DNA from: Neoechinorhynchus agilis
Taxonomy: Eukaryota > Animalia > Acanthocephala
NCBI GenBank assembly: GCA_051530055.1
Contig: CM121343.1
Location: 2,636,389-2,700,388, forward strand
DNA: 64,000 nucleotides
Reading direction: 5' to 3'
Shown here: piece by piece, positions 11,989-62,290 of the stretch
Layout of the letters: every line of letters begins with the position of its first letter
How positions within the stretch are numbered: position 1 is the stretch's first letter
Program-made: the position numbers and the translations under genes
Notes under the pieces: model-generated
Databases searched by the model: none
What the model was told of the DNA's origin: nothing
The model's input: the letters and a program-made list of their open reading frames with translations, nothing else

Positions 11989-14900
11989 TTAATCTTTAAC
12001 GACATATAATTTTGGCTGTTTTGCATCCATACGTCTGAATACAACGTTGACGTTATCAGAACCAGTAGCTGTTCGCTTCTCACAATCATTCTCTACGTTT
12101 TTGACCTCTTTTTTCACTTTTTCAATTTCATCTTTGATTCTTTGTTTAGCAGCTTCGATTCGCTTAAATCGCAGAACTTGATGATCTAACGTAGAAGCGA
12201 AATTGTAACTGTAACGGCAATAATAGTTTTTCCAAAGTCGGATGAATCTCATTGAAGGTATCAAGTAAATAGTTTGTTTGTAGCCGTGAGTGGATCCGGG
12301 CGAGTAAAATGGATTTAGAAAGTCTGTTCGATTTTGAAGGACGTAGGACCACAAGGAAACCGTGTTAGACGCTACCCTCTGAATACTCCTTTCTCTTTCA
12401 GAATTACAAATAAAAGTTCCAAACTGGCACGAGTACAAATGGTCCAAAATCGTTATCAGGAAGTACTCATTAAATTCAAATGCACAACTGTACTGCCGTT
12501 GAAACTGATAGACAGCATCAATGAATTGTAGAAATATAGGTGATCGGTCGGAATCACCGTAGTTATCTTCGCCATGACCTACTCTCGTCATAAACTTATG
12601 TCCAAAACTAATCCATTCCTTCTCTATAAGCACCATAAATCCTTCAAGCGTCCGGTAATAACTGTCAAGCATTAGCATTGACAGAGACGTCAATTGGCTG
12701 GTTCTAATTTATGTAATCTTTCAAAAGAGTTAACTAACTAAGATCACACAAAATATCCCATCCATCGCTGCAATGAACAAGAACTGAAGTTGATCTCCGA
12801 TCCAAAGCAACAACGATTTTATGAGCACCGAGCATTATTTGACGTACGTGCCACAACCATTCAGTTGCTTCGAGATCTTTAAAAAAACTACGATCGTCTT
12901 TAACCATCGGAAATAATAAATCATGGAGTCGACGAAGACTTTCACGCATTACGTGAATGTTGCCAATGTTTAAAAACTCAAACTCATGCTCAGGGTAGTC
13001 CTCATATCCTCCACCCTTTGCCATATTAGCAACGGCATTCACTTTTGGGCGGGCATCTATGATATGACAAGTCCCAATAAAGCTCAAATGCCACTTCAGT
13101 TCGAAAACCGCGAAATAAACTGCAATCAAATAAAAATAATTTCAATGTTTACACTTAGACTATAGCAAGAAAAAGAATTATAAAATGACGGCAAAGTGGA
13201 CGCATTTCAATTGTATTATCTGTACAAATATAAAAGGTTCTTCTTCGCAAAAGACGATACTAAGAATCATAAATCCACTGGCATTTTAATTACTACAATT
13301 AAATTATTTAAAGATTTTTCGTGAAATTAACTAATTTCATTGACAATAACAATTTAATAACGGATTTTATTCATGCCAAAGCGCTCAAAGTTCCCATGGG
13401 AACGCACACCCAGCGGTCTTCTGAATTAGAATTTTAAGTCCGATGAGCCCTTTTTAAAGTTCGGAATTAAAAAAGGCTTAAGAGACAAACAATTAGGACA
13501 TCTCATTGTGCTCCCAGAAGCAATGAGGAGGTACCGGGGTATATTGATTAGTGGAATTTTTGTTTAGAAGTCAACACCAGCGGTAAATGATTATTTCGAT
13601 TAAAGACGTTCTGCGAACCTCGTAGGTGCAGACCTAAAGAATAATTCCACTTTCTTTTGGTAATTTCGTTACCCAGGATTTAAATTCACAACAAAAATAC
13701 TTTCTTTTGGCAATTTTGCCATCCCGGGTTTAAATTCACTGATTATTTCCGATATTTAACGTCGGATAATTCCGGCCATCCGAAGATAATAAATAAAGTA
13801 GTTAAAAAGTCCCGCCAATTGATTAATTTTAGTCTTTTGAGAGAAGATCGATATTTGGCTTACTATATGGAAATTGAAAAATAAAAACACAAGATCAAAA
13901 AACTAAAACCGAAGCAACACTTGACTTGTCAAATCTTCGCTTCGCGAATCGAGTCATACAATATAAAGGCGACGTGATTGTGTAGGATTACAGGCCGCCA
14001 ATGCCGCAAGATAATTTTTATCGAATTCCGATTCACTTACTCGTGAACTCGAACCGCTTAAAATCCCAGTCATTGGTTGAGCCGATCGAATAAGTGCAGC
14101 GTGGTTCCGGGCGTTGTACCAAGAAAGCACAGGGATTCGGTGTTTACTTCTGTGTTCCCTGACTCTCCATAGTGGCGAATCTTCGAGCGATTGTTGATTG
14201 AATTTCTCATCAAGATCGGATGAGTCTGAATTAGGAATTGCTCGATTTCGAACAGCCGGTCTAAAGGATGCCGGAATAACAAGAACGTTTGGATAAGTAC
14301 AGCAAAACTCATAGTTTTCATTGATGTTTTTCTCGATTGACCAAGGACGTCCATTACTCGATCCATGAGAATCATGCGGCAACCTCATACGCTCAAACTC
14401 CGCCATCTTTTTATAAACATTCCAGCCGTATTGAACGGCAGCGGCACCGCCGCCGCCCGGCATCGATAGAAAGTGATCGAGATATTCAGCAGCATATGAT
14501 GGCCATGGTGGATTACTTATTGAGCCCGACGGAGAATACCTCTTAGCAACCCAAAAAGTCCGGAAGTATAGATCATTGAACAATTGCTTACGAACTCTGT
14601 CGGTTTTCTTAGTAGACAAGCAGATATGTCGGATATCTTTACAGAATATCTCAATTCCGTATCCGGAATTGTTTGAAGTCGTTTGACCGCCCATCTTCTC
14701 AATACGGGATATGCAACCATAAGGAAGAGAAAATGAAACGTTTTCTTCATTCGTGGAGTTTGTATCGTATATGAACAACAATCGATAAGTTGTGAGAACA
14801 ACTCTACCGTTGATACTCTTTACTCCACTACCTCGAATCCAGCAAACGTCACCGTAGTGGATCGTATTAGAATCCGTGATTGTGTAAGGGGAACACTTCG

Positions 14901-15132
14901 AGACGGACCCAATCGAGGATGCCAGAGAAGCTGACGTAGGTGGTGACGTAACCAAAATGTTTATTGACGGCGTCAGCGGTGTAAATAAACGAGACGTAGT
15001 CTCAGCCAACAACGAGCGCCCCTGGTCTATCGAATCCTCGTCCGTGGTATCAACGGAAGGCCCCTCAATATTCCCATCATCACTCTTCCCCTCACAGTAT
15101 TTAACAACCTTCGTATGATGTGCCGAAGACAT
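11989..15132 (-). CDS. MTMR2: Myotubularin (MTM1/MTMR1/MTMR2 subfamily) PI3P phosphatase in three coding blocks separated by two TA-flanked inserts
   Basis: GRAM-like region, [67 protein letters not shown]. Confidence 0.92.
12705..12755 (-). other. TA-flanked 49-nt hairpin insert in the myotubularin active-site codons
   Basis: TA at 12754-55 and 12705-06; removing 12707-12755 gives TGG GAT AGA ACC (W-D-R-T). Terminal IR TTTTGTGTGATCTT / AAGATTACATAAAT (11/14). Confidence 0.85.
13058..13958 (-). other. TA-flanked 899-nt insert in myotubularin
   Basis: TA at 13957-58 and 13058-59; removing 13060-13958 gives Y-I-V-D-A-R-P. The ends share inverted TATGA and TGACAAGTC blocks. Confidence 0.75.
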
Positions 15133-16027
15133 TGTATCACATCAAGATGAAAACGTCAGAACGAGCTGTCTTTTGGTATTGTTATATCTTCCTATGCATT
15201 ACCGCTCATTCAAATATGTACTTTGGTCAGGCCGATTTTTTAAGATTTCGTCTTCTACGTGGGAGTTCTTCAGAATTGTTTCGAATGATAGTTTGTTGAA
15301 ACATTTTTGAAGGTGCTACACGTAGAGGACGAAATATTAATTATTTTTCTTCACTTCGCCTTGACCAATACTATCCATGGAAAGAAATTATGCATTATAG
15401 TTTCAGCTTCAATTAGCGATGTTTGATTTATCTTGAAAATTTTCGGCGGCTCGGCAATAGGGTTTCACATCAATGGCAGTGGGCATGAAATCTATTTTGA
15501 TGGCGTCGAGGTTCTTGCGAGGAGTGACGTAAGACGCGAAAGAGTGACTGTGGAAGTCATCATTATCACGCAAACAGGTACTTTTGTTCGGGCAACAAAA
15601 CTGACTGCAAACTCAGTCTTCGAGTCCCACCGGATAAACTATTTGACCATGCTTCTTTCAAATTGTAGATTGACTGAAGAAGGTCAACGAAAAGGCCGAA
15701 AATTTTCAAAATAAATCTATTTTCTGAATCAAACATCGCTAATTGAAACCGAAACAATCTATGGAATTCAATCAATCTCCATGTCTCGCAATGTTCAATG
15801 CATTTTCGCGGGGCCGAACTGGTTCTGCTTAAACGTTCTTTGTAATGCCTTAATGAGTATTCCAAATGCAGGCAAAGGGCAGCACAAATTACGAGATCCA
15901 TAACGGTGGAATGATTTCTGCTAGAATTAATGAACAGCAGCCGTGAAAAAAACCTCACTTCAACACAGAATAAATGTAACCGGCTAGCCTGACTTTAACA
16001 GATGAAATAATTGGCCCAAAATTTAGA

Positions 16028-16225: not shown

Positions 16226-18317
16226 GCATATCCAACCTTTTACAATCTTTCTTCTAACGTTTTCCAAAAACTTAATACCTTTCATAAGAGGTGCGTTCTA
16301 ACCTCTGAATTCGTGCCATTAGAAAAACACCTCTGATTTTTCAAAAGTGCTTTCATTCTCTTCCGCCTCAATTTCTACCAAACATTCCTCCTTTTACTCA
16401 CACAACACTCGCGTCGCCCCAACATTTTCCATTATTCAGTTCCTCGCACAAATATCTACCTCTGCTCTTTTTCCCAAACGTTAAATCTTCCAAATGCGAA
16501 TTGATTCGGAGGAAAGAGCCGAGGTACAAGGTTCGGTGCCTTATGCTTCTTCTTTTAAATGAAACGTGTTTATATAACCGCATGATTCTGGGTATTAAGT
16601 GATTTTATACGCTTCCTTGAACCATATCAGTGGACTGTATACGCCTAAGGAAAAATTATCACGCGAGCCATACAATACAAAACAACTAAAATCTTTCTAT
16701 TTTGTTATTTCGGAAAATTAAAATAATTTATTGAATTCGATATTTCGGCAAACTCGTGTGCTTTTATCAAGATTGTTTCCAAATTTTTACGGTGAATTGA
16801 ATAAATTATTTTAATTTTCCATCATAACAAAACATGTACAATTAATCTTTGAAATATAAAATCTTTTCAGATGACTGATATAGCGAAGCTGACTCGCAAA
16901 ACAGTTCAATAAAATAATTTTTATCTGTGAGAGATTATAATCATTACAATTCAAACTTTATCACCATGAAGGATTTTCTCTCTATGATTAAAAATTCGTA
17001 TGGTGTTCCCGCCGCGTTAATCCGTTTATGATCGTAGATATAAAAAGTCTTAGCTGAAGAGTTTGTGAGAAGGAAATTGTCTTAATTTTGGAAATATACA
17101 CTCTGGCTTTGTTTTATCGCTGAGATCATTAATAACCAAAAATTTATCCATGGGTGCTTTAAAATGAGTGGGAGCCATTCCCTAAAAATAATTGTGCTAT
17201 TTTGAAGTTATAAACGAAATGGTTGGGGTATAAATCGTCGATTGTGAATCCCCTTAAAATCCGCTCATTAACATGCTCGCCATTGGCGCGGAAACTTTCA
17301 GTCGAAACCAAGACTGCTGATAGGTTGAAACTTGACAGTTAAATAAAAGCGCAGATTAGAAAACGTTCATTTTCGGGCTTTGGCAAATTCTATCTTTGCC
17401 TTCATGGCATAAATTTTCAGGACCATTCCAAGCTAAGGTTAAATTGAAGGATTATATTTGATCACTCCGTAGGTTGGTTAGACGGAATCCAAAAACTAGT
17501 TCTTGATGTTAACGACTTGTTTCAATGTTTTCTTGAATCATCAATACGATCCTTGACAGGACTGTAATGGAGGAACGTCTACTTCGAAATTTTAGTTCTT
17601 GAAACTAAGCCCCTTTGGAAGTGTGAAGTCAAAGATTTATGGAAATTATTGTAAAAAGCATTTGATTTGTTAATGCAATTTTATAAGCTTATTCACTGGG
17701 AAAATTATTGATGAAGTGATTAAATGATAAGCACGATACTAAGTTACTCCTCACTTCTCCGAAAACGCCGTGATGTTTTTTAAAAACCGTTGCAAAATGG
17801 TTTATCCAGGTACGTTTTGGAGCGTTAAAATGCAGATATGAACTTTTATTGATACAATGGAATGAGTGCTTAATACAGGATAATTTGCTTTGTCAGTCTT
17901 TGCAGGTTAGAATTTTACGTTTGCATAATTTATATATCGTTAATTTCCTCCTGATAGTTATCATTTTCACCACATTGGAGGCACTGAGAATTCCCTAGAA
18001 ATCGTTCACCCGGGTTTTGGATGGCACTGATGGTTTTTTGCTCATTGAGCGGATTTCAATATTTTAGCGAAAATAAATGGTAACGATTTTATTGGCTTAA
18101 CACTAAAAAAATTATATTCTCGTTTTATTTCTCGAAATCGGTATAAGCTGGTAAGCCTGATACTTATTTTGTTTAAGCAGGACAGATATTGAGGCTACTA
18201 TTTTAATCAGACGATGGGAGTTTTGATATCCATCATGGACATTCGAAAGGAATGGTTAAAGACGAATGTATGTTTCGATTGATTAAATCAATCATTATCA
18301 ATTCAAGTTTAAAGAAA

Positions 18318-21629: not shown

Positions 21630-23374
21630 ATGCTCGTTGAACTTACTTGGGTTCTAGTAGTTGCCGTAGTGACCTCGGTGGTTCTGGCAGCAAGTCTCGG
21701 TGCCAATGATGTCGGTAACTTCTTTGGGACATCCGTCGGTGCTAATGTGTTGTCTATTCGAAAAGCGTTTCTGCTAGCAGCCATTTCTGAGATTCTCGGG
21801 TCGGTTTTACTTGGTGAGAAAGTCTCGGATACAATATGGAAAAAGATTGTGAACTACAGTGATCTTAGAAATCGTGAAAGGTTTGTCATGGTGGGCAATT
21901 TATCTGCCATGATCGGCTGTTGCATTTGGCTTGTGATTGCAACCAAATTTAAATTAATAAGTGACGTGAGTGCCTGGATAGGTTGTTGTGATCTCCACAT
22001 CCATCTCGAAAATGAACACTAGCGTACACTGATACCTGTGTCGGCTACTCACAGCATTATAGGAGCCACGGTTGGGTACGCAATGGTTGCTCATGGAACG
22101 AAAGGAGTTAACTGGATTGTATTCATTAAGATTTTAATATCCTGGTTAATGTCACCACTTTTAGCTGGCACACTGTCCATGTTACTTTTATGGATTGTCC
22201 GAAGATTTCTGTCGACTGCTAATGAACCAGCGATTATTTTGATCAAATGGCTTCCTTTTATATATGGCTTTACAGTCATGATCAATGTCTTTTCTATTCT
22301 TGTAAATGGACAGAATACTCAGCTTCACTTATGGCAACAAGCAGTGATTACGACTTCACTGGGTATACTCGTTTCCTTGTTGGTTTGGTACTTTACCGTT
22401 CCGAGAATTACCAATTCTATACGGCAAATACTTGTCCCTTACTCAATAAAGTTACCTAAAGATGACGAAGAATACGACTCGAAACTGTCGGCATTGTTGG
22501 ACACAATAGAAAACTGACTTCTGGCTGGATACATTTGAACTATAAATTAGAAGCCATTTTTACAGTAGAAGAGGACAGTGTCCATGCAAAAGTTTCCCGC
22601 TATATAGATGACCAACCTTTAAACAACGATGAAGATATAAGTGCATGTAAACTGAAAGGAGAAAATCGCCGAAACTGCAGATCCATTGGACTTCAGGTCT
22701 ACATGGTGCCCGATCGTCATTTATCAACTGCTGGCAATAGTCAAACAGAATTCAGTTGTGTATGGGGTTCCGTAGGCGAAACACTTGAAAAATCACGCCG
22801 TAAATCCAAAATGAGATCTTTAGATGCTCAAACTAAAAAACCAGCTTTTGATAGACCTGACGTTGCTAAAATATTTGGCATTTTACAAGTAATGTCCGCT
22901 ATTTTTGGTAGCTTTACCCATGGAGGCAATGACGTTAGCAACGCTATTGCTCCATTAGTAGCCATATGGATGATATGGGTAACCGAATTAAACCTGATGG
23001 GCGCCAAAACTCCTTTATGGATCCTAATGCATGGAGGCTTATGTATTAGTATTGGAATTTGGTTCTTCGGAGAAGGAACGACCATTACTATTGGGAAAGG
23101 AATCACGTATGTTACACCGACTAGTGGTTTCGTAATTGAACTATGCAGTGCCATCGCTGTTCTAATTGCTTCGAATCTTGGGCTTCCTGTAAGTTCGACT
23201 CATTGCAAAGTCGGATCGGTCGTTTGCGTCGGTAGTTTAAACGGCGCTCGAGCTGTCAATTGGAAATTGGTTAGGAATATTGCTTTTGCGTGGACGGTGA
23301 CATTTCCTGCAACTGCTATTACTTCAGCCGGAGTAATGACTTTACTTATTCGCACAGTACCAAACCTTGATTAA
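21630..23374 (+). CDS. SLC20A: SLC20/PiT sodium-dependent phosphate transporter, interrupted by two TA-flanked inserts
   Basis: GANDVGNFFGTSVG, PVSATHSIIGA, HGGNDVSNAIAP, LGLPVSSTHCKVGSV signatures. Confidence 0.93.
21955..22034 (+). other. TA-flanked 78-nt hairpin insert in SLC20 containing an in-frame TAG
   Basis: TA at 21955-56 and 22033-34; removal gives K-L-P-V-S-A-T-H. IR AGTGACGTGAGTG (21960-72) / CACTAGCGTACACT (22017-30). Confidence 0.72.
22507..22567 (+). other. TA(GAA)-flanked 59-nt hairpin insert in SLC20
   Basis: Direct repeat TAGAA at 22507 and 22566; removal joins ORF 22038-22517 to ORF 22535-23374. IR AAAACTGACTTCT / AGAAGCCATTTTT (11/13). Confidence 0.72.
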
Positions 23375-29733: not shown

Positions 29734-31948
29734 CAGTAATACTTCGTTTATCCGGATTTATTGGGATCGGACACCATTCGGATACGATATTTCTCAGATA
29801 ACCGAAAATAAAAGTTCTTAACATGCGAAGGGGGTGGTTAAGAAAAGCGAAATCGGGGTGAAATTCTATAATTTTAGTTGTATTGATGAAAATAATCGCT
29901 TATTCGATCTCAGTGTACAATTGCAGGCCTTTGTTTCTTTTGCTGCGAGGTATCTGATTCTCTTGAAAACCAGTAGTTGAGTGGGACAACATTCTTATCC
30001 AGATAATGGACGTTTTGGATCATCAAAGTTCTACTGAATTTACTTTAAGAAACAATTTTCCCGAAACCTCTCAAATTAGGATATTTGTTCGGAAAATTAA
30101 ATACATTAGAACACCGTTTATCCCGGACACAATTCGGATAACCGAAAACCAACCGTGATGTGTTCTTTAGTTAAGAAAAGCAAAATCGGGGTGAAATTCT
30201 ATAATTTTAGTTGTATTGATGAAAATAATCACTTATTCGATCTCAGTGTACAATTGCAGGCCTTTGTTTCTTTTGCTGCGAGGTATCTGATTCTCTTGAA
30301 AAACAGTAGTTGAGTGGGACAACATTCTTATCCAGATAATGGACGTTTTGGATCATCAAAGTTTTACTGAATTTACTTTAAGAAACCTCTCAAATTAGGA
30401 TATTTGTTCGGAAAATTAAATACATTAGAACGCCGTTTATCCCGGACACAATTCGGATAACTGAAAACCCACCGTGAAGTGTTCTTTAGTTAGGAAAAGC
30501 AAAATCGTGGTGAAATTCTATAATTTTAGTTGTATTGATGAAAATAATCACTTATTCGATCTCAGTGTACAATTGCAGGCCTTTGTTTCTTTTGCTGCGA
30601 GGTATCTCGTTCTCTTGAAAACCAGTAGTTGAGTGGGACAACATTCTTATCCAGATAATGGACGTTTTGGATCATCAAAGTTTTACTGAATTTACTTTAA
30701 GAAACCTCTCAAATTAGGATATTTGTTCGGAAAATTAAATACATTAGAACGCCGTTTATCCCGGACACCATTCGGATAACTGAAAACCCACCGTGAAGTG
30801 TTCTTTAGTTAAGAAAAGCAAAATCGGGGTGAAATTCTATAATTTTAGTTGTATTGATGAAAATAATCACTTATTCGATCTCAGTGTACAATTGCAGGCC
30901 TTTGTTTCTTTTGCTGCGAGGTATCTGATTCTCTTGAAAACCAGTAGTTGAGTGGGACAACATTCTTATCCAGATAATGGACGTTTTGGATCATCAAAGT
31001 TTTACTGAATTTACTTTAAGAAACCTCTCAAATTAGGATATTTGTTCGGAAAATTAAATACATTAGAACGTCGTTTATCCCGGACACCATTCGGATAACT
31101 GAAAACCCACCGTGATGTGTTCTTTAGTTAAGAAAAGCAAAATCGTGGTGAAATTCTATAATTTTAGTTGTATTGATGAAAATAATCACTTATTCGATCT
31201 CAGTGTACAATTGCAGGCCTTTGTTTCTTTTGCTGCGAGGTATCTGATTCTCTTGAAAAACAGTAGTTGAGTGGGACAACATTCTTATCCAGATAATGGA
31301 CGTTTTGGATCATCAAAGTTTTACTGAATTTACTTTAAGAAACCTCTCAAATTAGGATATTTGTTCGGAAAATTAAATACATTAGAACGTCGTTTATCCC
31401 GGACACCATTCGGATAACTGAAAACCCACCGTGATGTGTTCTTTAGTTAAGAAAAGCAAAATCGGGGTGAAATTCTATAATTTTAGTTGTATTGATGAAA
31501 ATAATCACTTATTCGATCTCAGTGTACAATTGCAGGCCTTTGTTTCTTTTGCTGCGAGGTATCTGATTCTCTTGAAAAACAGTAGTTGAGTGGGACAACA
31601 TTCTTATCCAGATAATGGACGTTTTGGATCATCAAAGTTTTACTGAATTTACTTTAAGAAACCTCTCAAATTAGGATATTTGTTCGGAAAATTAAATACA
31701 TTAGAACGTCGTTTATCCCGGACACCATTCGGATAACTGAAAACCCACCGTGAAGTGTTCTTTAGTTAAGAAAAGCAAAATCGGGGTGAAATTCAATAAT
31801 TTCAGTTGTATTGATGAAAATAATCACTTATTCGATCTCAGTGTACAATTGCAGGCCTTTGTTTCTTTTGCTGCGAGGTATCTCGTTCTCTTGAAAACCA
31901 GTAGTTGAGTAGGACAACATTCTTATCCAGATAATTGGCATTCCACTG
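29734..31948. mobile_element. pogo/Tigger-like MITE expanded by an internal tandem array
   Basis: TA|CAGTAATACTTCGTTTATCCGGAT at the left and ATCCAGATAATTGGCATTCCACTG|TA at the right form imperfect CAGT-type TIRs with TA flanks. Confidence 0.6.
29837..31935. repeat. Tandem array, about 6.5 copies of a 319-bp unit (first copy 333 bp)
   Basis: Unit starts at 29837, 30170, 30489, 30808, 31127, 31446, 31765. Confidence 0.97.
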
Positions 31949-32523
31949 TAATTCGATCACATAAATCAGGTAATTCTTAATTACTTTTCTTGATCAACGA
32001 AGACGTGTAACGACGTGATTCACTACCGTGTCCAATATTCACACTGTCTACCTTAGTTCAAGGTCTGCGGTTGGTGCTGTGTGGCATACATTTTCGTCTA
32101 TGTTGCTCAAATGATGTTTTTGTACTCTTGGAACGTAGAACACATCGTTTTGTTTGATATTTGCCCCAAGAAAGTTCAAAACAAATACATTGCACGAACT
32201 TTATTAACACTTCAATTCCTAAGCTCTTGTCACTTTTTGCAAACAAAAAAATTTGTTGTCTATGTTTTAAAAGCGTTTACACTAAGAACCTAAAATATAG
32301 ATCTTTTTAGTAATTTGTTTTCTCTGAGTCTTGATTTTAATTGTTTTTCTTTTTAATGTCGTAAATTTCTTAATGAGAGCAATAATTCTAAAAGGATATT
32401 CAATTTCCTTATCCATGAATTAGGACATTATATTTTATTAAAATGTTGATGGTATATAATTGGGGTTAGTATTTAGGTTAAAGATAAAAATCCACGAGTA
32501 TGTGGAAGTGACGAAAAATTATC

Positions 32524-33199
32524 AAAGAATCGCTTTAATTGAAATATTTCGTCCAATCACACAAGAATTCTCCAGTCAGTTATTTCTCACTAATTTAACA
32601 ATATTTTTATGGAGATTGGCCAGCCGGTAGCTTATATCAATGTGTGGCCTTTTATCACACGCGGCTGATAATTTTTGGTCACACAGCCCACGGATTTGGT
32701 TCAGAGAAGTATTTCAATTACTCAATGCACTGAACCATCCGGTAAAAGAGTTTGTGCATTTCTACGGATCCTCAGATACCTCCAGGAGGCGGGACTCTCA
32801 TTGGTGAGTTTCCCCCCTTCAGCGGTATTTCGTCCCCTTTTGGTTGCGTGTCATTGGTGGTAACGGTTCCGAACCACTTGACCCCTAATCGGGATCGCGG
32901 GCATTAGTCCACTTGATCACCTCGACACAACTACGGAATGTACACAACCAGCCAATTTTACATTTATTAATTCAAGGCCATTGAATTTTTGAATTTTTAT
33001 GAAGATTGGCCAGTCGGTAACTTATATCAATGTGTGACCTATTCCCAAAAATTATCAGCCGTGTGATAAAAGGCCACAGATTGATATAAGTTACCGGGTG
33101 GCCAATCTTCATAAATAATATTGTTAAAGTAGTGAGAAATAATTGTCTGGAGAATTCCTGTGTGATTGGACGAAATATTTCAATTAAAGTGATTCTTTG
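32524..33199. repeat. About 155-bp inverted repeat pair with an extra partial direct copy
   Basis: 32524-32679 is the reverse complement of 33044-33199 with scattered mismatches; partial direct copy at about 32995-33040. Confidence 0.85.
32766..32933 (-). mobile_element. tRNA-derived SINE with rearranged hammerhead, copy 2
   Basis: Minus strand GTAGTTGTGTCGAGGTGATCAAG..GGTTCGGAACC head, then GGGGAC-GAAA-TACC, CTCA-CCAATGA-GA-GTCCC, GAGGTAT-C-TGAG. Confidence 0.75.
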
Positions 33200-33240
33200 A
33201 TATATAATTTTTAGGTGTTCTTCACCCAGTAAAAGATTAT

Positions 33241-34361: not shown

Positions 34362-35622
34362 ATGACATCCGAGAAGTCCAATCAGATACCAATTATATGC
34401 CATGGACATACTAGACCAATCACTGATCTAAAATTTAGTGGAATAACCGATTCCAGTTATATCCTAATTTCCGGCTCAAAAGGTAAACGCATTTCATAAA
34501 TCAGAGTTTGCTCAAAAAGAGAATTATTGAAGATGGGAACCCCATGATTCGTGAAGGCGATACTGGTGATTGGATTGGTACGCTTGTAGGCCACAAAGGA
34601 GCCATCTTCGGAGTGGCCATAAATAAGGCAGGAACAATGGCAGCCACTGCTTCCGCGGATTACACTATGCTAGTCTTAAAGTTTTTCATTCTTCTTATTC
34701 AGAAATTTATAGGAAAGTTTGGAATGTTGCCAATGGAATTCTTGTTCATGATTTCGAAGAGCAACATGTCGTTAAATGTGTTGACATATCACAAAGTTCT
34801 AAATATGCCATTACCGGATCGGCGAAAAACACCATTGCCTTATACGACATTGAAAGGGGCGAGGGTACGAGTTTGAATTGATCCAATGCTCTTTCGTCTA
34901 CTAGAAATACCAGTTAATAGCGTATACGAACAACATTCTGATAAGGTGAACAAAGTGGGTTTCACTTCCGACAAAACGTTTGTCTCAACCAGCAATGACC
35001 GAACGGTCAAGTGAGTTTCTATTTAAATACATAGATTAGATAATAACGATATTCGAGTTTAGTTTCTGTGATGTCCGAGTTCCAACTTTAGTCTACAGCC
35101 GATTAAACCTGGAACAACCTGCGGTGGGTCTCGAAATCAACTTGGATTACTCATACATGACATTTGTTCATGGGAAATGTGTATCATTCATCCGAAACTT
35201 TTGGTAATCGTCGTAAATTCTTTGTTTCATAAACTTATTCAAACAGTCCACATGACTTGATTCGTGCTGAAATGGAATGTCAAATGTCATCAGCAAGCAT
35301 TCACCCAAGGCAAGATCGTTTTGTCTGTGGTGGTGCCGATTTTAAACTCTACGAGTATTCTATTCCTCAAATTACTGAAATCGGTTGGTTTATGGTCATA
35401 AAGAAAATAGTACGACGCTATATCCTTCTTTTTTGTCCTTCAGCTTCGTATCGATCGCATTTCGGAGCAATCCACTGTGTACAATATTCACCAGACGGCG
35501 CCTTATTTGCAAGTGGATCTGAAGATGGAACTATTCGACTATTTCAGGAAGACGTCGGTAAAACTTATGGCCTCTGGAGCAACAGCCGTGAACCAGGAAT
35601 ATCAGCACAGGCCATTCAGTAA
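34362..35622 (+). CDS. STRAP: STRAP/UNRIP WD40 protein
   Basis: IICHGHTRPITDL, KDGNPMIREGDTGDWIGTLVGHKGA, HFGAIHCVQYSPDG..ASGSEDGTIRL..GKTYGLW; short introns, one with a GC donor. Confidence 0.93.
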
Positions 35623-36612: not shown

Positions 36613-37626
36613 AAATTATTTAAAAGGACCAGCAATCGATGATCGTTTATTGGAAATCGAATATTCAAGATAAAATATTGTTCCCTGGCGCCAGCGGACT
36701 ATTATTCGCTAGAAAACTAAGAATTTCTTCTGCCAGCGGCAATTTGACTCGCCGACACGTTCACATAATTTTTTATCCGCTTTACTGAGGTTCAATGGGT
36801 TATTGAGCAAATAGCGTATGCAAGAATACGCTGCGAATTCATCTCAATGAGAGGAAAATTTTGATAACGAGCCTGCCACGATGATAGCAGGCAAATCAAA
36901 ATAGAGAAAGAGAGCGTTAAATCTCAAATAATGTTTTTCTAGGAAGAAGGTGCAGCAATAAATGAACGTGCTTCTCATTTTCAATAAAGATGAACGAGTA
37001 AAACAGCGGACTTTCTGAAAATATACATTTGCAAATCTGTTATGTAAAACGTTTTGACTTCGAAACTTTGAGCGATATGATTATCACTACAAATCGCCCT
37101 GATTCGCCATCTAAATTTATTTCCATCTCTGCTCATTTTTGTGGAGAAAAAGGATGATAGTGGCAAAGAATGGTTCCGACATTTCAGAGCAGATTATGAA
37201 GAGCTGCCCGCGGTCTAAACCCCAATTTTTGAAAAAGATTTCATTCGTACAAAACCGAAAGGCAGTTTATATCTCACAGTAAAATAACTACGATTGTATG
37301 TCGACATGTAGATAGAATTTCAAATGTGGAATATTACAATTAATATCACTTTATTTTGGTAGCTACAACACCTCGTATTCAAACTGACTAATTTATTAAC
37401 GATATTTCACGTAGGACAATTCCGACATTTCTCCAAGATTTGTCATTGTAAATTAATCTAATCGATTGATTAATTATCGGTAATAAATTAGTCAGTGTTA
37501 GAACTACCAAAAGAAGGTATTGAATTTTAAATTGGAGTTTCACTCACATAAATTAGATTCACTTATTAATACAATTTTAATTTCCATCTTGCTATTGATG
37601 TGAAAAAAGATCTTGAGGGCAATTAT

Positions 37627-39040
37627 TCAAATATTGACTTCACTTCTTCGCCGTCCGATTGCAACTAGGCTTCTGGACCGTGAAGATTCGTGATTGTTCA
37701 TCATAATGCATTTTTTCCAGCTTCTTAAGGTTTTTGGGCACCAAATCCAACTGGATGAAGCGATTGCGACCGTGAGTATAGAAACGTGTTTGAGTAAGAC
37801 GACATTTTCGAAAGCGAATGGATTAAAGTTGCAAACCACTACGACGAAGGATGGGACAAGATAGAGGACGGAGAATATTCCAATCCTGAACATGAGTGCT
37901 TCCAACTTCCGTGCTCCGGAGTCGTGTTTTATGATAGTTCTTGTTCGAAAGAGGCTTGCGAATCCGAGTAGAAGAAATACACATGAGCCCATTAGATGGA
38001 TAACATGAATGGCTGATAGGACCGTATGGACCGAAGATTTCGGCACAGTTGTGCAAATGTAGTTTAAGGGATCGAATTGGATTTGATTGGGGTTCGATGA
38101 AGTCATCCATACGATTATTACGAGCGCCAGAGGGAATAAAACGATGAAAATGCGGATCCACCTTGTGAATCGTCCGATTGCTTCGTGGCTCCATTTAAGT
38201 GAGGCAGCGAGGAACCACGTAAGTCCGAGACAGGTGAACCAAATCGAGCCACTTATCCAGGAGCTTTGGATTGAAATGAACGTGGACGCACAGTGGAATT
38301 TGGATAATTCAGAATTATCACGGTTGAGATGTCTATTGAATATTCCACTGATGATATAGGTCAAGGCCAAAGGAACATACATGAGGCACATTACGCAAGT
38401 ACAGAGTTCTGGGTATCTGAACCGGCGTCGATCAATCATATACACCTGATTGAACTTAATTTAGTAGTTGAAATGCAAACTCCCCTTCTTTTGATGAGAA
38501 AAGTTCAATCTTCGGTTAGCTGCTGAGCGTAATCGCGCTTGAGATGAGTGTAAGAGACGACATTACCAATAGGAACTTCTGATGTTCTTTGATTGAATTA
38601 CTAGACAGTTGCAGATTGTTAGGTCGTTCGTCGAATGACAATGATTGATCAGTAGTCAAAATGTCATCTTCTGGTGGCTGAAAGCAAGTGCTTGCGTCCC
38701 GAAGAAGACTCCGACACTCATGAAGATTTGGACATAGTCGGAGACAAAAGGACAAACATGGAAGCAGAACAATTGGATCACCTTCCTCCGATTCAACGTT
38801 TGTACATACAGGAGCCAATAATGAGCATAAAACCAATTTGGATTTACATTGACGATCTTCAGCGAACTTATCAAACATCTCACTCACCTCCATTTGATTT
38901 CTATGCATTAAAACGTTTGGCATTCTTGTTGAGTTCCATGGCATTTGCAAGCATTGGGGAACTCGAAGCGGCTCACATTGACCAAGTGCGTCCGGAACAC
39001 TCACAAACCAAATAAGTGCGTTTAGTAATATAAAGACCAT
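37627..39040 (-). CDS. FZD: Frizzled family Wnt receptor (streamlined), split by one TA-flanked insert
   Basis: Signal peptide from ATG at 39040, 10-Cys CRD (CEPL..C..MPWN.T.MPN), IDRRRFRYPE, TWFLAASLKWSHEAI, KLEALMFRIGIFSVLYLVP, C-terminal KTLRSW. Confidence 0.93.
38441..38518 (-). other. TA-flanked 76-nt hairpin insert at the end of frizzled TM1
   Basis: TA at 38517-18 and 38441-42; removal gives I-T-L-S-S-Y-M-I-D, the same length as consensus F-T-V-L-T-F-L-I-D. Perfect 10-bp IR at 38448-57 and 38501-10. Confidence 0.82.
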
Positions 39041-39467: not shown

Positions 39468-40100
39468 ATGACGAATTTTATGAATTCGAGCTTTTTTATA
39501 TTTCTTCCGTGTCGCTGCCATCAACAGATATTCTTCTTTATTCAAACTTTAGAGCGGCGTTTTATTGCTTAAACCACTCACCAAATCTCTAATATGATGA
39601 CGTATTTTTTGAATTCGAGCTTATTTTACATTTCTTCCATGTCGCTGACATCAGAAGATATTCCTCTGTACGTTGGCGAATCCTGTCACCGGTGTTGTCG
39701 TTTCGCAAGTAAATAAATGAGTACCGATAACACCGGGGACAGGATTCGCCAACGTACAATCAAATTTATCCCGAGGACAATGATATGTGACATATTCCTC
39801 TGTATTCCAAATTCAGAGTACACCAACAGCGTGGAATTTTATTGTTTAAACCCCTTACTAAATATCTAATATGATGACGCTTATTTGAATTCGAGCTTTT
39901 TTACATTTCTTCCGTGTCACGACCATCAAAAGATATTCCACTGTATTCAAAATTTAGAGTACATTAGCAACGTGACATTTTATTGCTTAAACCCCTTACT
40001 AAATCTCTAATATGATGACGTTTATTTGAATTCGCGCTATTTCTACATTTCTTCCATGTCGCGACCATCAAAAGATATTCTTCTTCACTCGGATTTCAGA
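39468..40100. repeat. Four degenerate copies of a roughly 130-140 bp unit between the divergent frizzled and CCT4 genes
   Basis: Recurrent ATGACG..TGAATTCG(A/C)GC..TTTCTTCC(A/G)TGTC..CATCA..AGATATTC at about 39468, 39595, 39871 and 40012. Confidence 0.85.
39671..39754. mobile_element. 84-bp TA-flanked mini-MITE with 30-bp TIRs
   Basis: TA|CGTTGGCGAATCCTGTCACCGGTGTTGTCG-24 nt-CGATAACACCGGGGACAGGATTCGCCAACG|TA; TIRs 28/30 identical. Confidence 0.88.
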
Positions 40101-40110
40101 GTTCCGTACA

Positions 40111-41736
40111 ATGCAGCTTTTGCAGAGGATGCCTATGGATGAACCGGCGAGTTCTCAGAAACAAATGTTCGGTGTTCAACGAAAAACGGCGGATATCCGC
40201 GAGGGGAATATCGCAGCGGGTAAATCAGTGAGTGATGCCATACGTACGAGTCTCGGTCCGCGTGGCATGGATAAAATGATTGTGAATCACGATGGTGATG
40301 TAATGATTACGAATGATGGGGCTACCATTTTGAAAAAAATGCATTTGGTTCATCCTATAGGAAAGATGCTTGCTTCATTGAGCCGTGCTCAGGATTCTGA
40401 GGCTGGGGATGGTACTACAACCGTAGTCATTCTCGCGGGATGCCTTTTAGAAGCAGCGTCAGGCGTACTGAGCAACGGTGTTCATCCAACAGTTGTCAGT
40501 GAATCGTTTACATTGGCTGCTTCAAAAGCGGTTGAAGTATTGACGGATATGAGTATTGGCATTGATTTGGAAGATCGTACATCTTTGCTCAAGAGTGCAA
40601 TGACGGCTCTGAGTTCAAAAGTGGTCAGTCAGAACAGTGAGTGCTTAGCAAATATAGCCGTGGATGCCGTAATGAAGGTGATGAAGGATAATGATGCCAA
40701 CATCGACGATGTTCACATTCATAAGAAACTCGGAGGTACTTTAGACGACACTAGTCTTGTTGACGGATTTATTCTGGATCACGATGTAGCCGGATTCGGT
40801 GGTCCGAATGTTGTGGAAAACGCAAATATCGCTCTCATTCAGTTCTGGCTGAGTGCACCAAAGACGGATATTGAACACAGTGTTGTGATTAGCGATTACA
40901 CCCAATTGGACCGGGCTTTACGTGAAGAAAGGCAATATATACTTGGGATGGTTAGAGACATAAAGAAAGCTGGATGTAATGTTTTACTTGTCCAGAAATC
41001 AATTCTGAGAGAAGCTACGACTGAGTTGGCTTTACAAATGCTCGCTAAGGCGAAAATAATGGTGATTAGAGATATTGACCGGTCTGACGTGGATGAAATC
41101 TGTAGAGCACTCGGATGTATTCCAATCGCGAGCATTGATCATTTTAAAGCTCATTCGTTTGCCCGTGCTGATCTCGTGGAAAGGATTGAAGGCGAAGCTG
41201 GAGGTAAGAGAATGGTCAAGTTTAGTGGATTAAAAAGAGCGATTGGTGCTGGCCATCCAGTATCAATCATTGTCAGAGGATCAAACCGTCTTGTTTTGGA
41301 CGAAGCAGAACGTAGTCTTCACGACGCATTGTGCGTGGTCCGGTGTTTAGTGAAACAACAAGCGCTCATTGTCGGTGGAGGAGCACCGGAAATCGAAATG
41401 GCAGTGAAACTGCATGACTATGCGCTTAATCATCTAGAAGGCGCTCAACAATACGCCGTGCGAGCATTTTCTGACTCTTTGGAAACGATTCCTTACACTC
41501 TGGCTGAAAACGCCGGTCTTAACGCTGTTGAAGTCGTCACCGCTCTGAGAGGAGCTCATGTCAGTGGAAACAAAAACGTCGGTATCAGTGTTAGACGGCA
41601 TGGAATAGGAAATATGCTCGATGAATCCGTAATTCAGCCTTTACTATGCAGCACCAGCGCAATCTCCCTTGCTACGGAAGCTGTAACTCAGATTCTTAAA
41701 ATCGATGGCGTCCTTTTAGCTGAGCGACTTGGATGA
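40111..41736 (+). CDS. CCT4: T-complex protein 1 subunit delta (CCT4), intronless
   Basis: 541-aa ORF with AIRTSLGPRGMDKMI, ITNDGATIL, GDGTTTVV and the CCT4-specific SAPKTDIEHSVVISDYTQLDRALREERQYIL. Confidence 0.97.
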   Translation: MQLLQRMPMDEPASSQKQMFGVQRKTADIREGNIAAGKSVSDAIRTSLGPRGMDKMIVNHDGDVMITNDGATILKKMHLVHPIGKMLASLSRAQDSEAGDGTTTVVILAGCLLEAASGVLSNGVHPTVVSESFTLAASKAVEVLTDMSIGIDLEDRTSLLKSAMTALSSKVVSQNSECLANIAVDAVMKVMKDNDANIDDVHIHKKLGGTLDDTSLVDGFILDHDVAGFGGPNVVENANIALIQFWLSAPKTDIEHSVVISDYTQLDRALREERQYILGMVRDIKKAGCNVLLVQKSILREATTELALQMLAKAKIMVIRDIDRSDVDEICRALGCIPIASIDHFKAHSFARADLVERIEGEAGGKRMVKFSGLKRAIGAGHPVSIIVRGSNRLVLDEAERSLHDALCVVRCLVKQQALIVGGGAPEIEMAVKLHDYALNHLEGAQQYAVRAFSDSLETIPYTLAENAGLNAVEVVTALRGAHVSGNKNVGISVRRHGIGNMLDESVIQPLLCSTSAISLATEAVTQILKIDGVLLAERLG

Positions 41737-47321: not shown

Positions 47322-47610
47322 TTTGATGAAAAAAGTGCACTATACAAAATAGAAATCATCAATGTACAAAAGACGAAAATTTGCTGAAAACGTCGTCGAA
47401 AATTAAAATATTTAAGTGATTTTAAAATTCATTTGAAACATTCAATACCCACATTTCATATGTCATCGCAAATTAATAATACGGATTTTTAAGAATATAA
47501 AAATTGTGTAACTAATATGAAATCTCTTAAAACTATGGCGTCAATAAGAAAAAAGATACAAAATGAATTTGTTATTTTCAATAATAGTAAAGAGAATTTG
47601 TCAGAAAGAG

Positions 47611-50528
47611 TAATAAAAGTTCGATTTTGATCACAAAACCCGTCTGACGTATTGACTTTTGAACGATAAGAATAAAATCGTATTCAAAATTAGATAGAAA
47701 AATGCCGCCCTCAATTCATAGAACATCGATTCAATTATAATGAAACTTCCTGAACGTTTTCAATTTTTAATCTTGGCAGTAAGCAAAATTTTCATAAGGA
47801 GAATAATAAAAGTTCGATTTTGATCACAAAACCCGTCTGACGTATTGATTTTTGATCGATAATTAAAAAAGTATTCAAAATTGGATAGAAAAATGCCGCC
47901 CTCAATTCATAGAACATCGATTCAATTATAATGAAACTTCCTGAGCGTTTTCAATTTTTAATCGTGGCAGTAAGGAAAGTTTTCATATAAAGAGTAATAA
48001 AAGTTCGATTTTGATCACAAAACCCGTCTGACGTATTGATTTTTGATCGATAATTAAAAAAGTATTCAAAATTAGATAGAAAAATGCCGCCCTCAATTCA
48101 TAGAACATCGATTTAATTATAATGAAACTTCCTGAACGTTTTCAATTTTTAATCGTGGCAGTAAGGAAAGTTTTCATATAAAGAGTAATAAAAGTTCGAT
48201 TTTGATCACAAAACCCGTCTGACGTATTGATTTTTGATCGATAATAATAAAAGTATTCAAAATTAGATAGAAAAATGCCGCCCTCAATTCATAGAACATC
48301 GATTTAATTATAATGAAACTTCCTGAGCGTTTTCAATTTTTAATCGTGGCAGTAAGGAAAGTTTTCATATAAAGAGTAATAAAAGTTCGATTTTGATCAC
48401 AAAACCCGTCTGACGTATTGATTTTTGATCGATAATTAAAAAAGTATTCAAAATTGGATAGAAAAATGCCGCCCTCAATTCATAGAACATCGATTCAATT
48501 ATAATGAAACTTCCTGAACGTTTTCAATTTTTAATCGTGGCAGTAAGCAAAATTTTCATAAGAAGAATAATAAAAGTTCGATTTTGATCACAAAACCCGT
48601 CTGACGTATTGATTTTTGATCGATAATTAAAAAAGTATTTAAAATTAGATAGAAAAATGACGCCCTCAATTCATAGAACATCGATTCAATTATAATGAAA
48701 CTTCCTGAACGTTTTCAATTTTTAATCGTGGCAGTAAGGAAAGTTTTCATATAAAGAGTAATAAAAGTTCGATTTTGATCACAAAACCCGTCTGACGTAT
48801 TGATTTTTGATCGATAATTAAAAGTATTCAAAATTAGATAGAAAAATGCCGCCCTAATTCATAGAACATCGATTCAATTATAATGAAACTTCCTGAACGT
48901 TTTCAATTTTTAATCGGCATAAGGAAAGTTATAAAAGAGTAATAAAAGTTCGATTTTGATCACAAAACCCGTCTGACGTATTGATTTTTGATCGATAATT
49001 AAAAAAGTATTCAAAATTGGATAGAAAAATGCCGCCCTCAATTCATAGAACATCGATTTAATTATAATGAAACTTCCTGAGCGTTTTCAATTTTTAATCG
49101 TGGCAGTAAGGAAAGTTTTCATATAAAGAGTAATAAAAGTTCGATTTTGATCACAAAACCCGTCTGACGTATTGATTTTTGATCGATAATTAAAAAAGTA
49201 TTCAAAATTGGATAGAAAAATGCCGCTGGTTGGATAATTAAAAGTATTTAAAATTAGATAGAAAAATGCGCCCTCAATTCATAGAACATCGATTCAATTA
49301 TAATGAAACTTCCTGAACGTTTTCAATTTTTAATCGTGGCAGTAAGGAAAGTTTTCATATAAAGAGTAATAAAAGTTCGATTTTGATCACAAAACCCGTC
49401 TGACGTATTGATTTTTGATCGATAATTAAAAAGTATTCAAAATTAGATAGAAAAATGCCGCCCTCAATTCATAGAACATCGATTCAATTATAATGAAACT
49501 TCCGAACGTTTTCAATTTTTAATCGTGGCAGTAAGGAAAATTTTCATAAGAAGAATAAAAGTTCGATTTTGATCACAAAACCCGTCTGACGTATTGATTT
49601 TTGATCGATAATTAAAAAAGTATTCAAAATTAGATAGAAAAATGCCGCCCTCAATTCATAGAACATCGATTTAATTATAATGAAACTTCCTGAACGTTTT
49701 CAATTTTTAATCGTGGCAGTAAGCAAAATTTTCATAAGAAGAATAAAAGTTCGATTTTGATCACAAAACCCGTCTGACGTATTGATTTTTGATCGATAAT
49801 ATAAAAGTATTCAAAATTAGATAGAAAAATGCCGCCCTCAATTCATAGAACATCGATTCAATTATAATGAAACTTCCTGAACGTTTTCAATTTTTAATCG
49901 TGGCAGTAAGCAAAATTTTCATAAGAAGAATAAAAGTTCGATTTTGATCACAAAACCCGTCTGACGTATTGATTTTTGATCGATAATTAAAAAAGTATTC
50001 AAAATTGGATAGAAAAATGCCGCCCTCAATTCATAGAACATCGATTTAATTATAATGAAACTTCCTGAGCGTTTTCAATTTTTAATCGTGGCAGTAAGGA
50101 AAGTTTTCATATAAAGAGTAATAAAAGTTCGATTTTGATCACAAAACCCGTCTGACGTATTGATTTTTGATCGATAATTAAAAAAGTATTCAAAATTAGA
50201 TAGAAAAATGCCGCCCTCAATTCATAGAACATCGATTTAATTATAATGAAACTTCCTGAACGTTTTCAATTTTTAATCGTGGCAGTAAGGAAAGTTTTCA
50301 TATAAAGAGTAATAAAAGTTCGATTTTGATCACAAAACCCGTCTGACGTATTGATTTTTGATCGATAATTAAAAAAGTATTTAAAATTAGATAGAAAAAT
50401 GCCGCCCTCAATTCATAGAACATCGATTCAATTATAATGAAACTTCCTGAGCGTTTTCAATTTTTAATCGTGGCAGTAAGGAAAGTTTTCATATAAAGCG
50501 TAATAAAAGTTCGATTTTGATCGCAAAA
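47611..50528. repeat. Satellite, about 15 copies of a roughly 191-bp unit
   Basis: TAATAAAAGTTCGATTTTGATCACAAAACCCGTCTGACG recurs at 47611, 47804, 47995, 48186, 48377, 48568, 48759 and onward; one shortened and one rearranged unit near 48940 and 49225. Confidence 0.98.
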
Positions 50529-50530
50529 CG

Positions 50531-54436: not shown

Positions 54437-54492
54437 TATAATCGATGAGCAAACCCTGAAATTACTGATCACTTGACAAATGTTCTCCCCAT

Positions 54493-56336: not shown

Positions 56337-56954
56337 TGAAAGTTATTAGTTTTTCCCAATCGAACGTAAGTAAACAAATGACCCTACGAACAGGCAACAT
56401 ATAATTGTCCTTGGGAAATCGTAACGATGGTGAGTGAATACCCGATCACTTGAGCGACTTTCCCTGAGCCTTATTGACAATAATGACAAAAGCCAGCCGT
56501 ATTTGGAACTGCAGGCGACTATAAGTGAAAGGCAAGTCCGTTGGTAAGAGGGGAATTCTTTTAATGAACTCGGGATGTATGCAAAAGATCTCCTACTAAC
56601 AATAAAACTCTAGACTTACTAATAACGAGAAATTCAACGAAAAAAACGGCCAGAGAGGTTCAAATCTATCTAAGAAAGTCTAACCAAGAAAACCATAAGA
56701 ACGATGGAACAATATCAAACTTTACCATAAATCAATACAAATTAATAAACGGTTCAATTACGTCACTGATTGCGGTGCTGCTCCTGAAATCACTTTTCCG
56801 AGCACAAACGGATTGTACCGGAGAAGGCTTTCTGCAGAATTAGATCCGGAAAATAATGGACTGTGAATTTCGATAAGAAAATTTTTTAAATTCTTCTTTT
56901 TTCGTGTTTATCCCTTTTCGAGGTCGCACAAAAATGTTCAATCAAACATAGTTC

Positions 56955-58699: not shown

Positions 58700-58897
58700 T
58701 ATTTCCTTTGGAAACCTTTTCGGCTTAACTTACAGACATCGGATGCACTTAGCCGCGCTCGAAGGGATCGGGCCAACCCACTTTTTTTATGGGCCTATGG
58801 GCGATCCCTCGCACCCCAGTGGAACCCAGTGACCGGTGGCGTTGAACCCTTGACATATAGAGCGCATTATGAACGCGCACACCACTCGGCCACTGTC
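58700..58897 (-). mobile_element. tRNA-derived SINE of a second family; 3' end approximate
   Basis: A box TGGCCGAGTGGT and B-box-like GGTTCAACGCC, followed by a GC-rich hairpin body (GGGATCG..CGATCCC). Confidence 0.6.
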
Positions 58898-61718: not shown

Positions 61719-61747
61719 TTAAAATATGTACATATCGATCGGCGCCA

Positions 61748-62290
61748 TTAGTATATAAGGGACTGTGTGTTCGTGATTGGTGGTCGAATAAAAAACCGGT
61801 AGCTCAAGAGAAATTGTTGAATCGATAACGAATTCTTGTAACGGTCACTACTGATCTCCACTCGCCGTTTGAAAGTCCCGATGAACCTCTCTACCAATCC
61901 GTTCGTTTGCGGATGGTATGGAGATGCGCAAATGTGCTTGATACCATTCGCTGTACAGAATTGTCCGAATTGAGCCGATTGAAAAGGTGGTCCGTTATCG
62001 GATGTGATTTCGGCTGGAACTCGAAATCGTGCAAAAACTGTTCTTAATTTGCTGATCGTTTCGAACGCTGATATTGAACTTATCGGAATGATCTCTGGCC
62101 AATGACTATAGGCATCTATAAGCACGCAATAAGGTGTCCAACGATTGGTCCTGCGAAATCTAAGTCAAGTATTTCCTCGAGTTCATGTTGACAGGCAGCA
62201 AAACGTGCCGCAACGAAATGCGCTGACCGCGCGTTGCAACTTTGGACCATCCGACAATAATACCTTCAGTCTGCCATCACCGCCTGTCTG
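61748..62290 (-). pseudogene. Ty3/Gypsy integrase core fragment
   Basis: LDFAGP (frameshift) LIDAYSHWPEI..FARFRVPAEITSDNGPPF..GIKH..SPYHPQTNGLVERF. Confidence 0.88.

Follow-up and report, generated by a model that had tools for sequence, protein, structure and literature searches.

In a 64,000-nt stretch of the genome of the acanthocephalan Neoechinorhynchus agilis (assembly GCA_051530055.1, contig CM121343.1, positions 2,636,389 to 2,700,388 of the forward strand; hereafter the window), we found four foldback insertions of 49 to about 900 nt, elements A to D, each with terminal inverted repeats and a duplicated TA, lying inside conserved codons of three protein-coding genes. At all four sites, joining at the two TAs with retention of one of them was the only join that restored the conserved protein, and the ordinary introns of the window lacked these features. 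The TA duplication and the terminal inverted repeats are, judged from the sequence, marks of a Tc1/mariner-type insertion. [quoted passage not shown]

Element A interrupted the catalytic loop of a myotubularin, the gene of which was encoded on the minus strand in three parts. The features of this locus were as follows (positions are those of the window; adding 2,636,388 gives positions in CM121343.1, where element A corresponds to CM121343.1:2,649,093-2,649,143).

15132..11989, minus strand: myotubularin gene of the MTM1/MTMR2 type, in three parts, with GRAM and myotubularin-like phosphatase domains (Pfam)
13957..15132, minus strand: exon 1, with the GRAM domain and the first part of the phosphatase domain, ending in TAT ATT GTA (open reading frame, Pfam, gene model)
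12754..13057, minus strand: exon 2, DARP...HCSDGWD plus the retained TA (gene model, MTMR2 alignment)
12705..12755, minus strand: element A, a 47-nt foldback core (12707-12753) flanked by TA (sequence, Pfam, MTMR2 alignment, Pomphorhynchus laevis ortholog)
11989..12704, minus strand: exon 3, (R)TSQLTSL... through the stop codon
12704..12749, minus strand: nested GT..AG candidate at element A, gtgtga...aaattag, 46 nt, yielding no Arg
12740..12752, minus strand: 5' arm of the element A stem, UUUGUGUGAUCUU, from the fold
12708..12720, minus strand: 3' arm of the element A stem, from the fold

The C-terminal part of the protein matched PF06602 of Pfam with an E-value of 2.7e-93. Around element A the protein read VHCSDGWD, then 49 nt, then RTSQLTSL, and on the minus strand the context was GTT CAT TGC AGC GAT GGA TGG GA-TA-(47 nt)-TA-GA ACC AGC CAA TTG, with the left TA at 12755-12754, the right TA at 12706-12705, and a 47-nt core of the sequence TTTTGTGTGATCTTAGTTAGTTAACTCTTTTGAAAGATTACATAAAT. 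Removal of 49 nt, that is, the core and one TA, gave GAT AGA ACC (D-R-T) and rebuilt the AGA codon for the Arg of the C(X)5R motif. This Arg is indispensable in cysteine phosphatases. An original prediction made from the letters of this stretch had described a C(X)5R loop split by a 49-nt TA-hairpin insert, and its coordinates and sequence proved to be exact. Because of the TA repeat, the cut had three equivalent registers, in which the removed piece read TA..AT, AT..TT, or TT..TA; none of these was GT-AG or AT-AC.

Two other joins were considered. Cutting at the nested GT-AG sites produced DILTSQL, in which IL replaced R, and cutting at TA..AG produced CSDGWETSQL, so that the Arg was lost in both, with the very products that the original prediction had listed. 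When otherwise identical 360-residue constructs were scored with Pfam, the TA-TA, GT-AG (IL), and TA-AG (E) products gave 376.8, 367.6, and 363.8 bits, respectively, placing the GT-AG join 9.2 bits under the TA-TA join. The TA-TA product also aligned without a gap across the loop to 1ZSQ and 1LW3, sequences from crystal structures of human MTMR2. The sequence, the scores, and this alignment upheld the claim that only TA-to-TA removal restores the Arg. In the large protein database searched, the nearest protein to the N. agilis myotubularin was the ortholog of P. laevis, with 61% identity (approximately 55% for the next matches), and the proposed comparison with a related species gave the same answer: the TA-TA join agreed with the P. 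laevis ortholog over the catalytic loop. The motif of active myotubularins, CSDGWDR in the Myotub-related domain (MTM1/MTMR1/MTMR2 group), is predicted to be intact solely after the TA-TA join. The joined mRNA would be expected to read GGATGGGATAGAACCAGCC after TA-TA removal and GGGATATTTTAACC after use of GT-AG. Elements A and B were both absent from the P. laevis myotubularin gene, the introns of which were all GT-AG and at other positions.

The two ends of element A formed an inverted repeat with 11 matches in 14 positions. In the fold predicted with ViennaRNA, they formed a 13-bp stem in which two of the pairs were G.U, with the UA dinucleotides paired to each other at the base of the stem; the repeat and its two sense-strand G-U pairs were thus as originally described. 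With its flanks, the element had a folding energy of -14.2 kcal/mol (z = -2.5), and 4 of 200 shuffled sequences were equally stable. The 51-nt element alone gave -12.1 kcal/mol for the sense strand versus -3.4 kcal/mol for the antisense strand (z = -3.3). If element A was kept, the reading frame ran into a TAG stop codon at 12736-12734.

Three further inserts of the same anatomy, one in the same gene and two in other genes, were found in the window.

13058..13958, minus strand: element B, in that myotubularin gene, 901 nt with both TAs counted, CM121343.1:2,649,446-2,650,346, ATTG-TA-(897 nt)-TA-GATGCC
21955..22034, plus strand: element C, in a PiT/PHO4 phosphate transporter gene, 80 nt with both TAs counted, CM121343.1:2,658,343-2,658,422, AAAT-TA-(76 nt)-TA-CCTGTG
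38441..38518, minus strand: element D, in a Frizzled gene, 78 nt with both TAs counted, CM121343.1:2,674,829-2,674,906, AGCAGC-TA-(74 nt)-TA-TATGATT

Element B, with a terminal stem of 12 pairs, split the protein at LYIV/DARP. Its TA-TA join gave RRLYIVDARP, which also aligned to MTMR2 with no gap, and in P. laevis the corresponding ALFIVDARP lay inside a single exon with no intron there. The Pfam score was 376.8 bits for the TA-TA join versus 369.1, 363.1, and 356.2 bits for the alternatives; a canonical GT...AAG option would add 11 residues within the invariant motif. Element C, with 12 end-to-end pairs, gave KFKL/PVSATHS on TA-TA joining, a product that aligned without a gap to the Thermotoga PiT 6L85 and scored 169.4 bits, versus 155.8 bits for the use of a nested GTGAGT..CTAG intron, which would add the seven residues ISDRTLI within an invariant motif. 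Element D, with 13 end-to-end pairs, lay between the first transmembrane segment and the IDxxRFxYPE motif (IDRRRFRYPE) of Frizzled. It was without a usable GT donor, and its left TA together with the next A formed the stop codon TAA. The TA-TA join at element D gave AITLSSYMIDRRRFRYPE, which aligned without a gap to human FZD1 and scored 139.1 versus 132.4 bits. Taken together, all four N. agilis inserts had TA/TA borders with one TA retained and were located in conserved codons, the TA-TA join had the top Pfam score at each of them, the next best of the joins tested lying 7 to 14 bits lower, and retention of the insert created a premature stop in every case. The insert ends were TATTTTGT/TAATTTAT for A, TATGACTC/TATGATAT for B, TAATAAGT/TATCAGTG for C, and TAACCGAA/TACACCTG for D.

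As controls, we analyzed the other introns of the window, which were mostly of the ordinary GT-AG kind and 40-60 nt long. Close to the borders, within a few bases, 0 of 14 GT-AG introns had a TA-TA alternative that kept the frame, and pairing of the first with the last 18 nt in the minimum-energy fold amounted to 0-8 pairs in these 14, compared with 12-13 in elements A, C, and D. The recurrence of the TA/TA pattern exceeds chance. Intron 2 of the STRAP gene (34666-34711, plus strand) was without a GT donor and gave DYTMKVW as a GC-AG intron and DYTRKVW on TA-TA joining; it had neither end-to-end pairs (0) nor a terminal hairpin, and was left out as a fifth member of the class, being simpler as a GC-AG intron. 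The annotated STRAP model has 320 aa, versus 323 aa in our own model. At a second N. agilis locus of 22 kb (CM121341.1:17,121,540-17,143,658), where a kinase and a WARS2-like gene lie with a paralog of PiT, only GT-AG introns were seen in the conserved genes checked, indicating that TA/TA elements are not in every gene. A 51-nt in-frame read-through in the WARS2-like gene proved to be a plain GT-AG intron.

Scans of the whole window were less discriminating. TA-bounded inverted repeats numbered 99, versus 54-86 in Markov shuffles, only a slight rise. In an energy scan, which had a high background, TA-bounded hairpins were found for 1.4-1.5% of TA pairs versus 1.5 and 1.2% for the AT and AA controls, respectively; this rate equaled that of the controls, and the TA/TA class is not recognizable outside coding sequence by such a scan. 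A scan for deletions that merge open reading frames, allowing any dinucleotide repeat, was far too permissive and gave nothing usable. No Rfam family matched in the window or at element A, and no tRNA genes were found in the window.

The PiT site offered a comparison with a second acanthocephalan class. The P. laevis PiT ortholog KAI0982729.1 begins at the same Met as the annotated N. agilis PiT, and the P. laevis annotation is split, the N-terminal exon being a separate model of 126 aa and the rest a model of 537 aa. Between them we found the following insert.

WNNJ02002344.1, L003:934-9952: P. laevis PiT insert, 9,019 nt between AGT TTG (RFSL) and CCT GTA (PVSATHS)

This insert was located at the same phase-0 Leu/Pro codon boundary as element C. 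Its ends formed a stem of 15 + 4 bp with two G.U pairs (-31.5 kcal/mol for the sense strand versus -26.9 kcal/mol for the antisense strand), its borders were AT..AA with neither TA nor a direct repeat, and its interior contained debris of a long interspersed nuclear element (LINE). A nested GT..AG in it would add 14 residues, unrelated to the seven of N. agilis element C. The position was uninterrupted in the N. agilis PiT paralog and in a Rotaria homolog. Either the insert at this site is old and common to two acanthocephalan classes, with the stem maintained and the sequence changed, or the site was hit twice.

The published gene models broke at the inserts. The N. agilis annotation was made by BRAKER with RNA-seq hints (PMC12690905). 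In it, the Frizzled model, 174 aa long, terminates at the TAA that the left TA of element D creates. The PiT model KAL7668390.1 begins at the first Met 3' of element C, dropping a 109-residue N-terminal PHO4 exon, and does not take the in-frame GT-AG intron present at element C. No myotubularin model over exons 2 and 3 was found in the protein collection searched. These breaks speak, as weak evidence, against well-supported canonical junctions there. In addition, KAL7668390.1 removes a 245-nt GT-AG "intron" (22363-22607, plus strand) that holds a transmembrane stretch, GILVSLLVWYFTVPRI..., which is also conserved in the ortholog of P. laevis; the actual second PiT junction, near 22450-22570, may also be non-canonical.

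How, then, might such genes remain functional? Retention would give stops at all four sites while the genes are otherwise intact and conserved, and with three intact conserved genes in 64 kb carrying four insertions that each create a stop, not all of these would be tolerable unless removed; some removal must therefore occur. For removal from RNA, the following course can be proposed. In the pre-mRNA, the two arms would pair (for element A, through the 13-bp stem with the UA dinucleotides paired at its base), and this pairing would draw the two junctions near each other. The element and one UA would be excised and the exons joined, giving GAU-AGA-ACC with the catalytic Arg of CSDGWDR. Candidate machineries would be a spliceosome tolerating clamped non-GT/AG ends, as has been proposed for Fritillaria, Amoebophrya, and euglenids (PMC11282704, PMC7789003, PMC3935182), or an endonuclease together with a ligase. 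We ranked removal from RNA first because the hairpin is common to the P. laevis insert, which is without TA; because the elements coexist and overlap in length with normal introns; because there is an animal precedent in Fritillaria with architectural parallels in Amoebophrya and euglenids; and because precise intragenic DNA elimination is unknown in animals.

Several points weigh against this reading. The occurrence of removal, its place in RNA, and its machinery are what we infer from genomic letters. The N. agilis sequence read comprised the window and the 22-kb locus of CM121341.1, less than 0.2% of the genome. No second copy of A to D was found in the window, at the second N. agilis locus, or at the P. 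laevis loci by pattern searches with up to three mismatches or by blastn, so that membership of A to D in a transposon family is no more than putative. The original prediction had taken the G-U pairs as mildly favoring pairing at the RNA level. This argument did not generalize: the excess of G.U pairs on the sense strand was clear in element A and in the P. laevis element, and over the terminal stems of five elements it was 5 sense versus 2 antisense, which is not significant and no more than a weak hint. Finally, the strict TA/TA borders in all four N. agilis cases are also a hallmark of DNA excision of the Paramecium type.

Owing to that signature (strict TA/TA with one TA retained, as in ciliates), programmed DNA excision is the main rival and a serious one, although we consider it unlikely. 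The assembly would represent the germline form, and a domesticated transposase would cut at the TAs, with repair leaving one TA. The inserts would be germline-limited and precisely excised from somatic nuclear DNA, like the internal eliminated sequences (IESs) of Paramecium, here in animal protein-coding genes; we judge such a Paramecium-style arrangement improbable to the same degree. The exact TA/TA borders with one TA retained in 4/4 N. agilis inserts fit this well, and as in Paramecium IESs the inserts break coding sequence, have lengths between 49 and about 900 nt, and are without common sequence (PMC3464196, PMC2425466). Germline DNA could also dominate the assembly, the source of the DNA having been whole worms and egg-filled females (PMC12690905). 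Nevertheless, precise intragenic elimination has no precedent in animals and none has been reported for Acanthocephala; the ends of A to D do not match the Paramecium consensus TAYAGYNR, strong terminal hairpins are foreign to IESs, and TA-bounded hairpins were no commoner in the window than AT- or AA-bounded ones, with the high scan background noted above. The P. laevis insert at the codon boundary of element C is not TA-bounded, and since the hairpin rather than the TA is the feature in common with P. laevis, a strictly TA-dependent DNA excisase fits less well.

Ordinary splicing of the nested 46-nt GT-AG intron (12749..12704), yielding a catalytically dead pseudophosphatase, is quite unlikely. 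Both GT and AG exist there, the segment is like local introns in its length and its aaattag acceptor, and dead myotubularins are known in other animals. Against this, no other residue of the catalytic loop is disrupted, and this join is scored 9.2 bits lower. Such splicing does not work at element D, which has no donor, and at B and C it would add 11 and 7 residues, respectively, in invariant motifs; moreover, the annotation prepared with RNA-seq hints contains no model using these introns. Very unlikely is the possibility that element A is not removed at all and marks a recent pseudogene or a null allele caught in the assembly. The marks of insertion (TA duplication, inverted repeats) are present, and the retained insert would lead to a stop after seven codons, but four such inserts were found in three otherwise intact, strongly conserved genes of the window, the assembly represents the consensus of a pool of about 50 worms (PMC12690905), and long persistence is implied by the insert that P. 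laevis has at the same PiT site. An artefact of assembly or sequencing, such as lost bases masking a normal GAT AG/GT donor, was raised in the original prediction and is conceivable for a hybrid assembly of Oxford Nanopore (ONT) and Illumina reads (PMC12690905), but is barely credible given that the TA/TA and hairpin anatomy was repeated at three independent sites, that the independently assembled P. laevis genome has a hairpin-ended insert at the element C site, and that the 49 nt form an orderly inverted repeat not expected from insertion-deletion error.

Known classes of removable or skipped sequence were also considered for element A and rejected. A U2-type GT-AG or GC-AG intron did not fit, as the Arg-restoring segment reads TA..AT, AT..TT, or TT..TA and the nested GT..AG loses the Arg. 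A U12-type AT-AC intron requires 5' /ATATCCTT, the branch site TCCTTAAC, and a 3' AC, motifs that are absent from element A, which in the AT register begins with ATTTTGTG and ends with TT. Bulge-helix-bulge introns are characterized by two 3-nt bulges and a 4-bp helix, and IRE1-type introns by twin 7-nt CNGNNGN loops; element A folded as a plain symmetric hairpin with TA:TA paired at the base. Programmed translational bypass, as in T4 gene 60 and the mitochondrial byps, was rejected in view of the take-off codon GAT versus the ATT preceding AGA, the 901 nt of element B, and the nuclear location of the genes. The stem of element A has only 13 bp, which disfavored a precursor microRNA or a mirtron. 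Stem-to-junction offsets did not agree among elements A, C, and D and that of P. laevis, so that a simple geometry of the RNase III or bulge-helix-bulge type does not fit.

With regard to systems in which non-canonical introns have been described, the N. agilis inserts appear to have the feature of hairpin-defined introns, that is, non-canonical borders with base pairing joining the ends. The nonconventional introns of euglenids likewise occur beside GT-AG introns and have non-canonical borders and paired ends (PMC3935182, PMC4770533, PMC11282704); short direct repeats at their junctions blur the exact cut, their length ranges from tens to thousands of nucleotides, and a MITE origin is suspected. 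However, the CAG/CTG pairing at +4..+6 and -8..-6 of euglenid introns was absent from the N. agilis inserts, their borders vary whereas those of N. agilis are all TA/TA, and their removal from RNA has been demonstrated whereas that of the N. agilis inserts is deduced. In the introners of Amoebophrya, a hairpin with inverted repeats of 8-20 nt also joins the exon ends, a short direct repeat overlaps the boundary, the terminal dinucleotide is not fixed, and how they are spliced is not known (PMC7789003). Their direct repeat is variable and 3-5 nt in length, compared with 2 nt and always TA in N. agilis, and in this dinoflagellate they are multi-copy and make up >60% of introns, whereas the N. 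agilis elements are a minority with no second copy seen. The one animal precedent is the tunicate Fritillaria borealis, in which MITE-derived non-canonical introns have inverted repeats and target-site duplications (PMC11282704). These introns are new and species-specific, and are cut precisely from RNA by an adapted U2-type spliceosome (PMC11282704; bioRxiv 10.1101/2025.08.15.670264). They differ in being mostly AG-AC/AG-AT after TAC, about 95% of introns being non-canonical, while N. agilis introns are mostly GT-AG and the odd ones TA/TA. Introns of Fritillaria were found to fail in splicing when placed outside it.

Paramecium IESs share with the N. agilis inserts an obligatory TA at both ends, one of which is retained, and are short, of unique sequence, and interrupt codons; they descend from Tc1/mariner (PMC3464196, PMC2425466). 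In contrast to those of the inserts, their ends follow the consensus TAYAGYNR and form no strong hairpin. They are removed as DNA during development of the ciliate macronucleus. Tc1/mariner (Stowaway-like) MITEs resemble A to D in the TA target-site duplication, the terminal inverted repeats directly inside it, and the foldback shape. On the other hand, MITEs are multi-copy and not normally excised precisely, whereas no extra copy of A to D was seen in the 64-kb window and the 22-kb locus, and with 47 nt the core of element A is unusually small for a MITE.

Other features of the window were also recorded. A 683-nt foldback (32520-33202) contained a perfect 31-bp stem segment, with smaller hairpins in its right arm (32996-33115 and 33015-33096). 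Four intergenic hairpins (39667-39758, 15408-15747, 16712-16820, and 37383-37496) had perfect stems of 16-21 bp, one being located in the interval that separates Frizzled from the divergently oriented CCT4 and another a short distance upstream of the start codon of myotubularin; since their stems do not end at TA, they form a class apart from A to D. Five tandem arrays with copies 90-99% alike were located at 1771-2815, 30063-31935, 47605-50529, 54492-56344, and 62540-63098, with periods of 348, 319, 191 (also 375), 192, and 98 nt, respectively. Retroelement debris at about 58200-62500 (minus strand) included a frameshifted LINE with endonuclease and reverse transcriptase and an integrase-core fragment at 61751-62164; the LINE open reading frames of the window had no match in a collection of 5.8 billion proteins. 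The CCT4 (TCP-1 delta) gene (40129-41736, plus strand) was intronless, and its product showed only 55-60% identity with every other animal sequence, P. laevis and rotifers included, indicating that the lineage is strongly divergent.

TA/TA inserts of this kind appear to be new for Acanthocephala, no earlier report having been found. The word "intron" is absent from the main text of both the N. agilis (PMC12690905) and the P. laevis genome papers, and we found no literature report of non-canonical introns or DNA elimination in this phylum. In the N. agilis genome, which has 46.2 Mb and a GC content of 38.8% (PMC12690905), standard gene finders truncate or miss genes at the inserts, as seen in the window for PiT, Frizzled, and myotubularin. 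Such failure may contribute to the very low BUSCO completeness of acanthocephalans (47% for N. agilis), and errors of gene prediction could then account for part of the gene loss inferred from BUSCO. Removal at the DNA level, if that is what takes place, would make this the first known case of precise intragenic DNA elimination in an animal. If removal from RNA is true, Acanthocephala would be the second independent animal lineage, after the tunicate Fritillaria, to tolerate transposon-like insertions inside codons, because the cell would excise them without GT-AG signals. As the inserts coexist with normal introns, the two pathways would be directly comparable in one organism, with a bearing on the origin of new introns and on how far splice-site recognition drifts.

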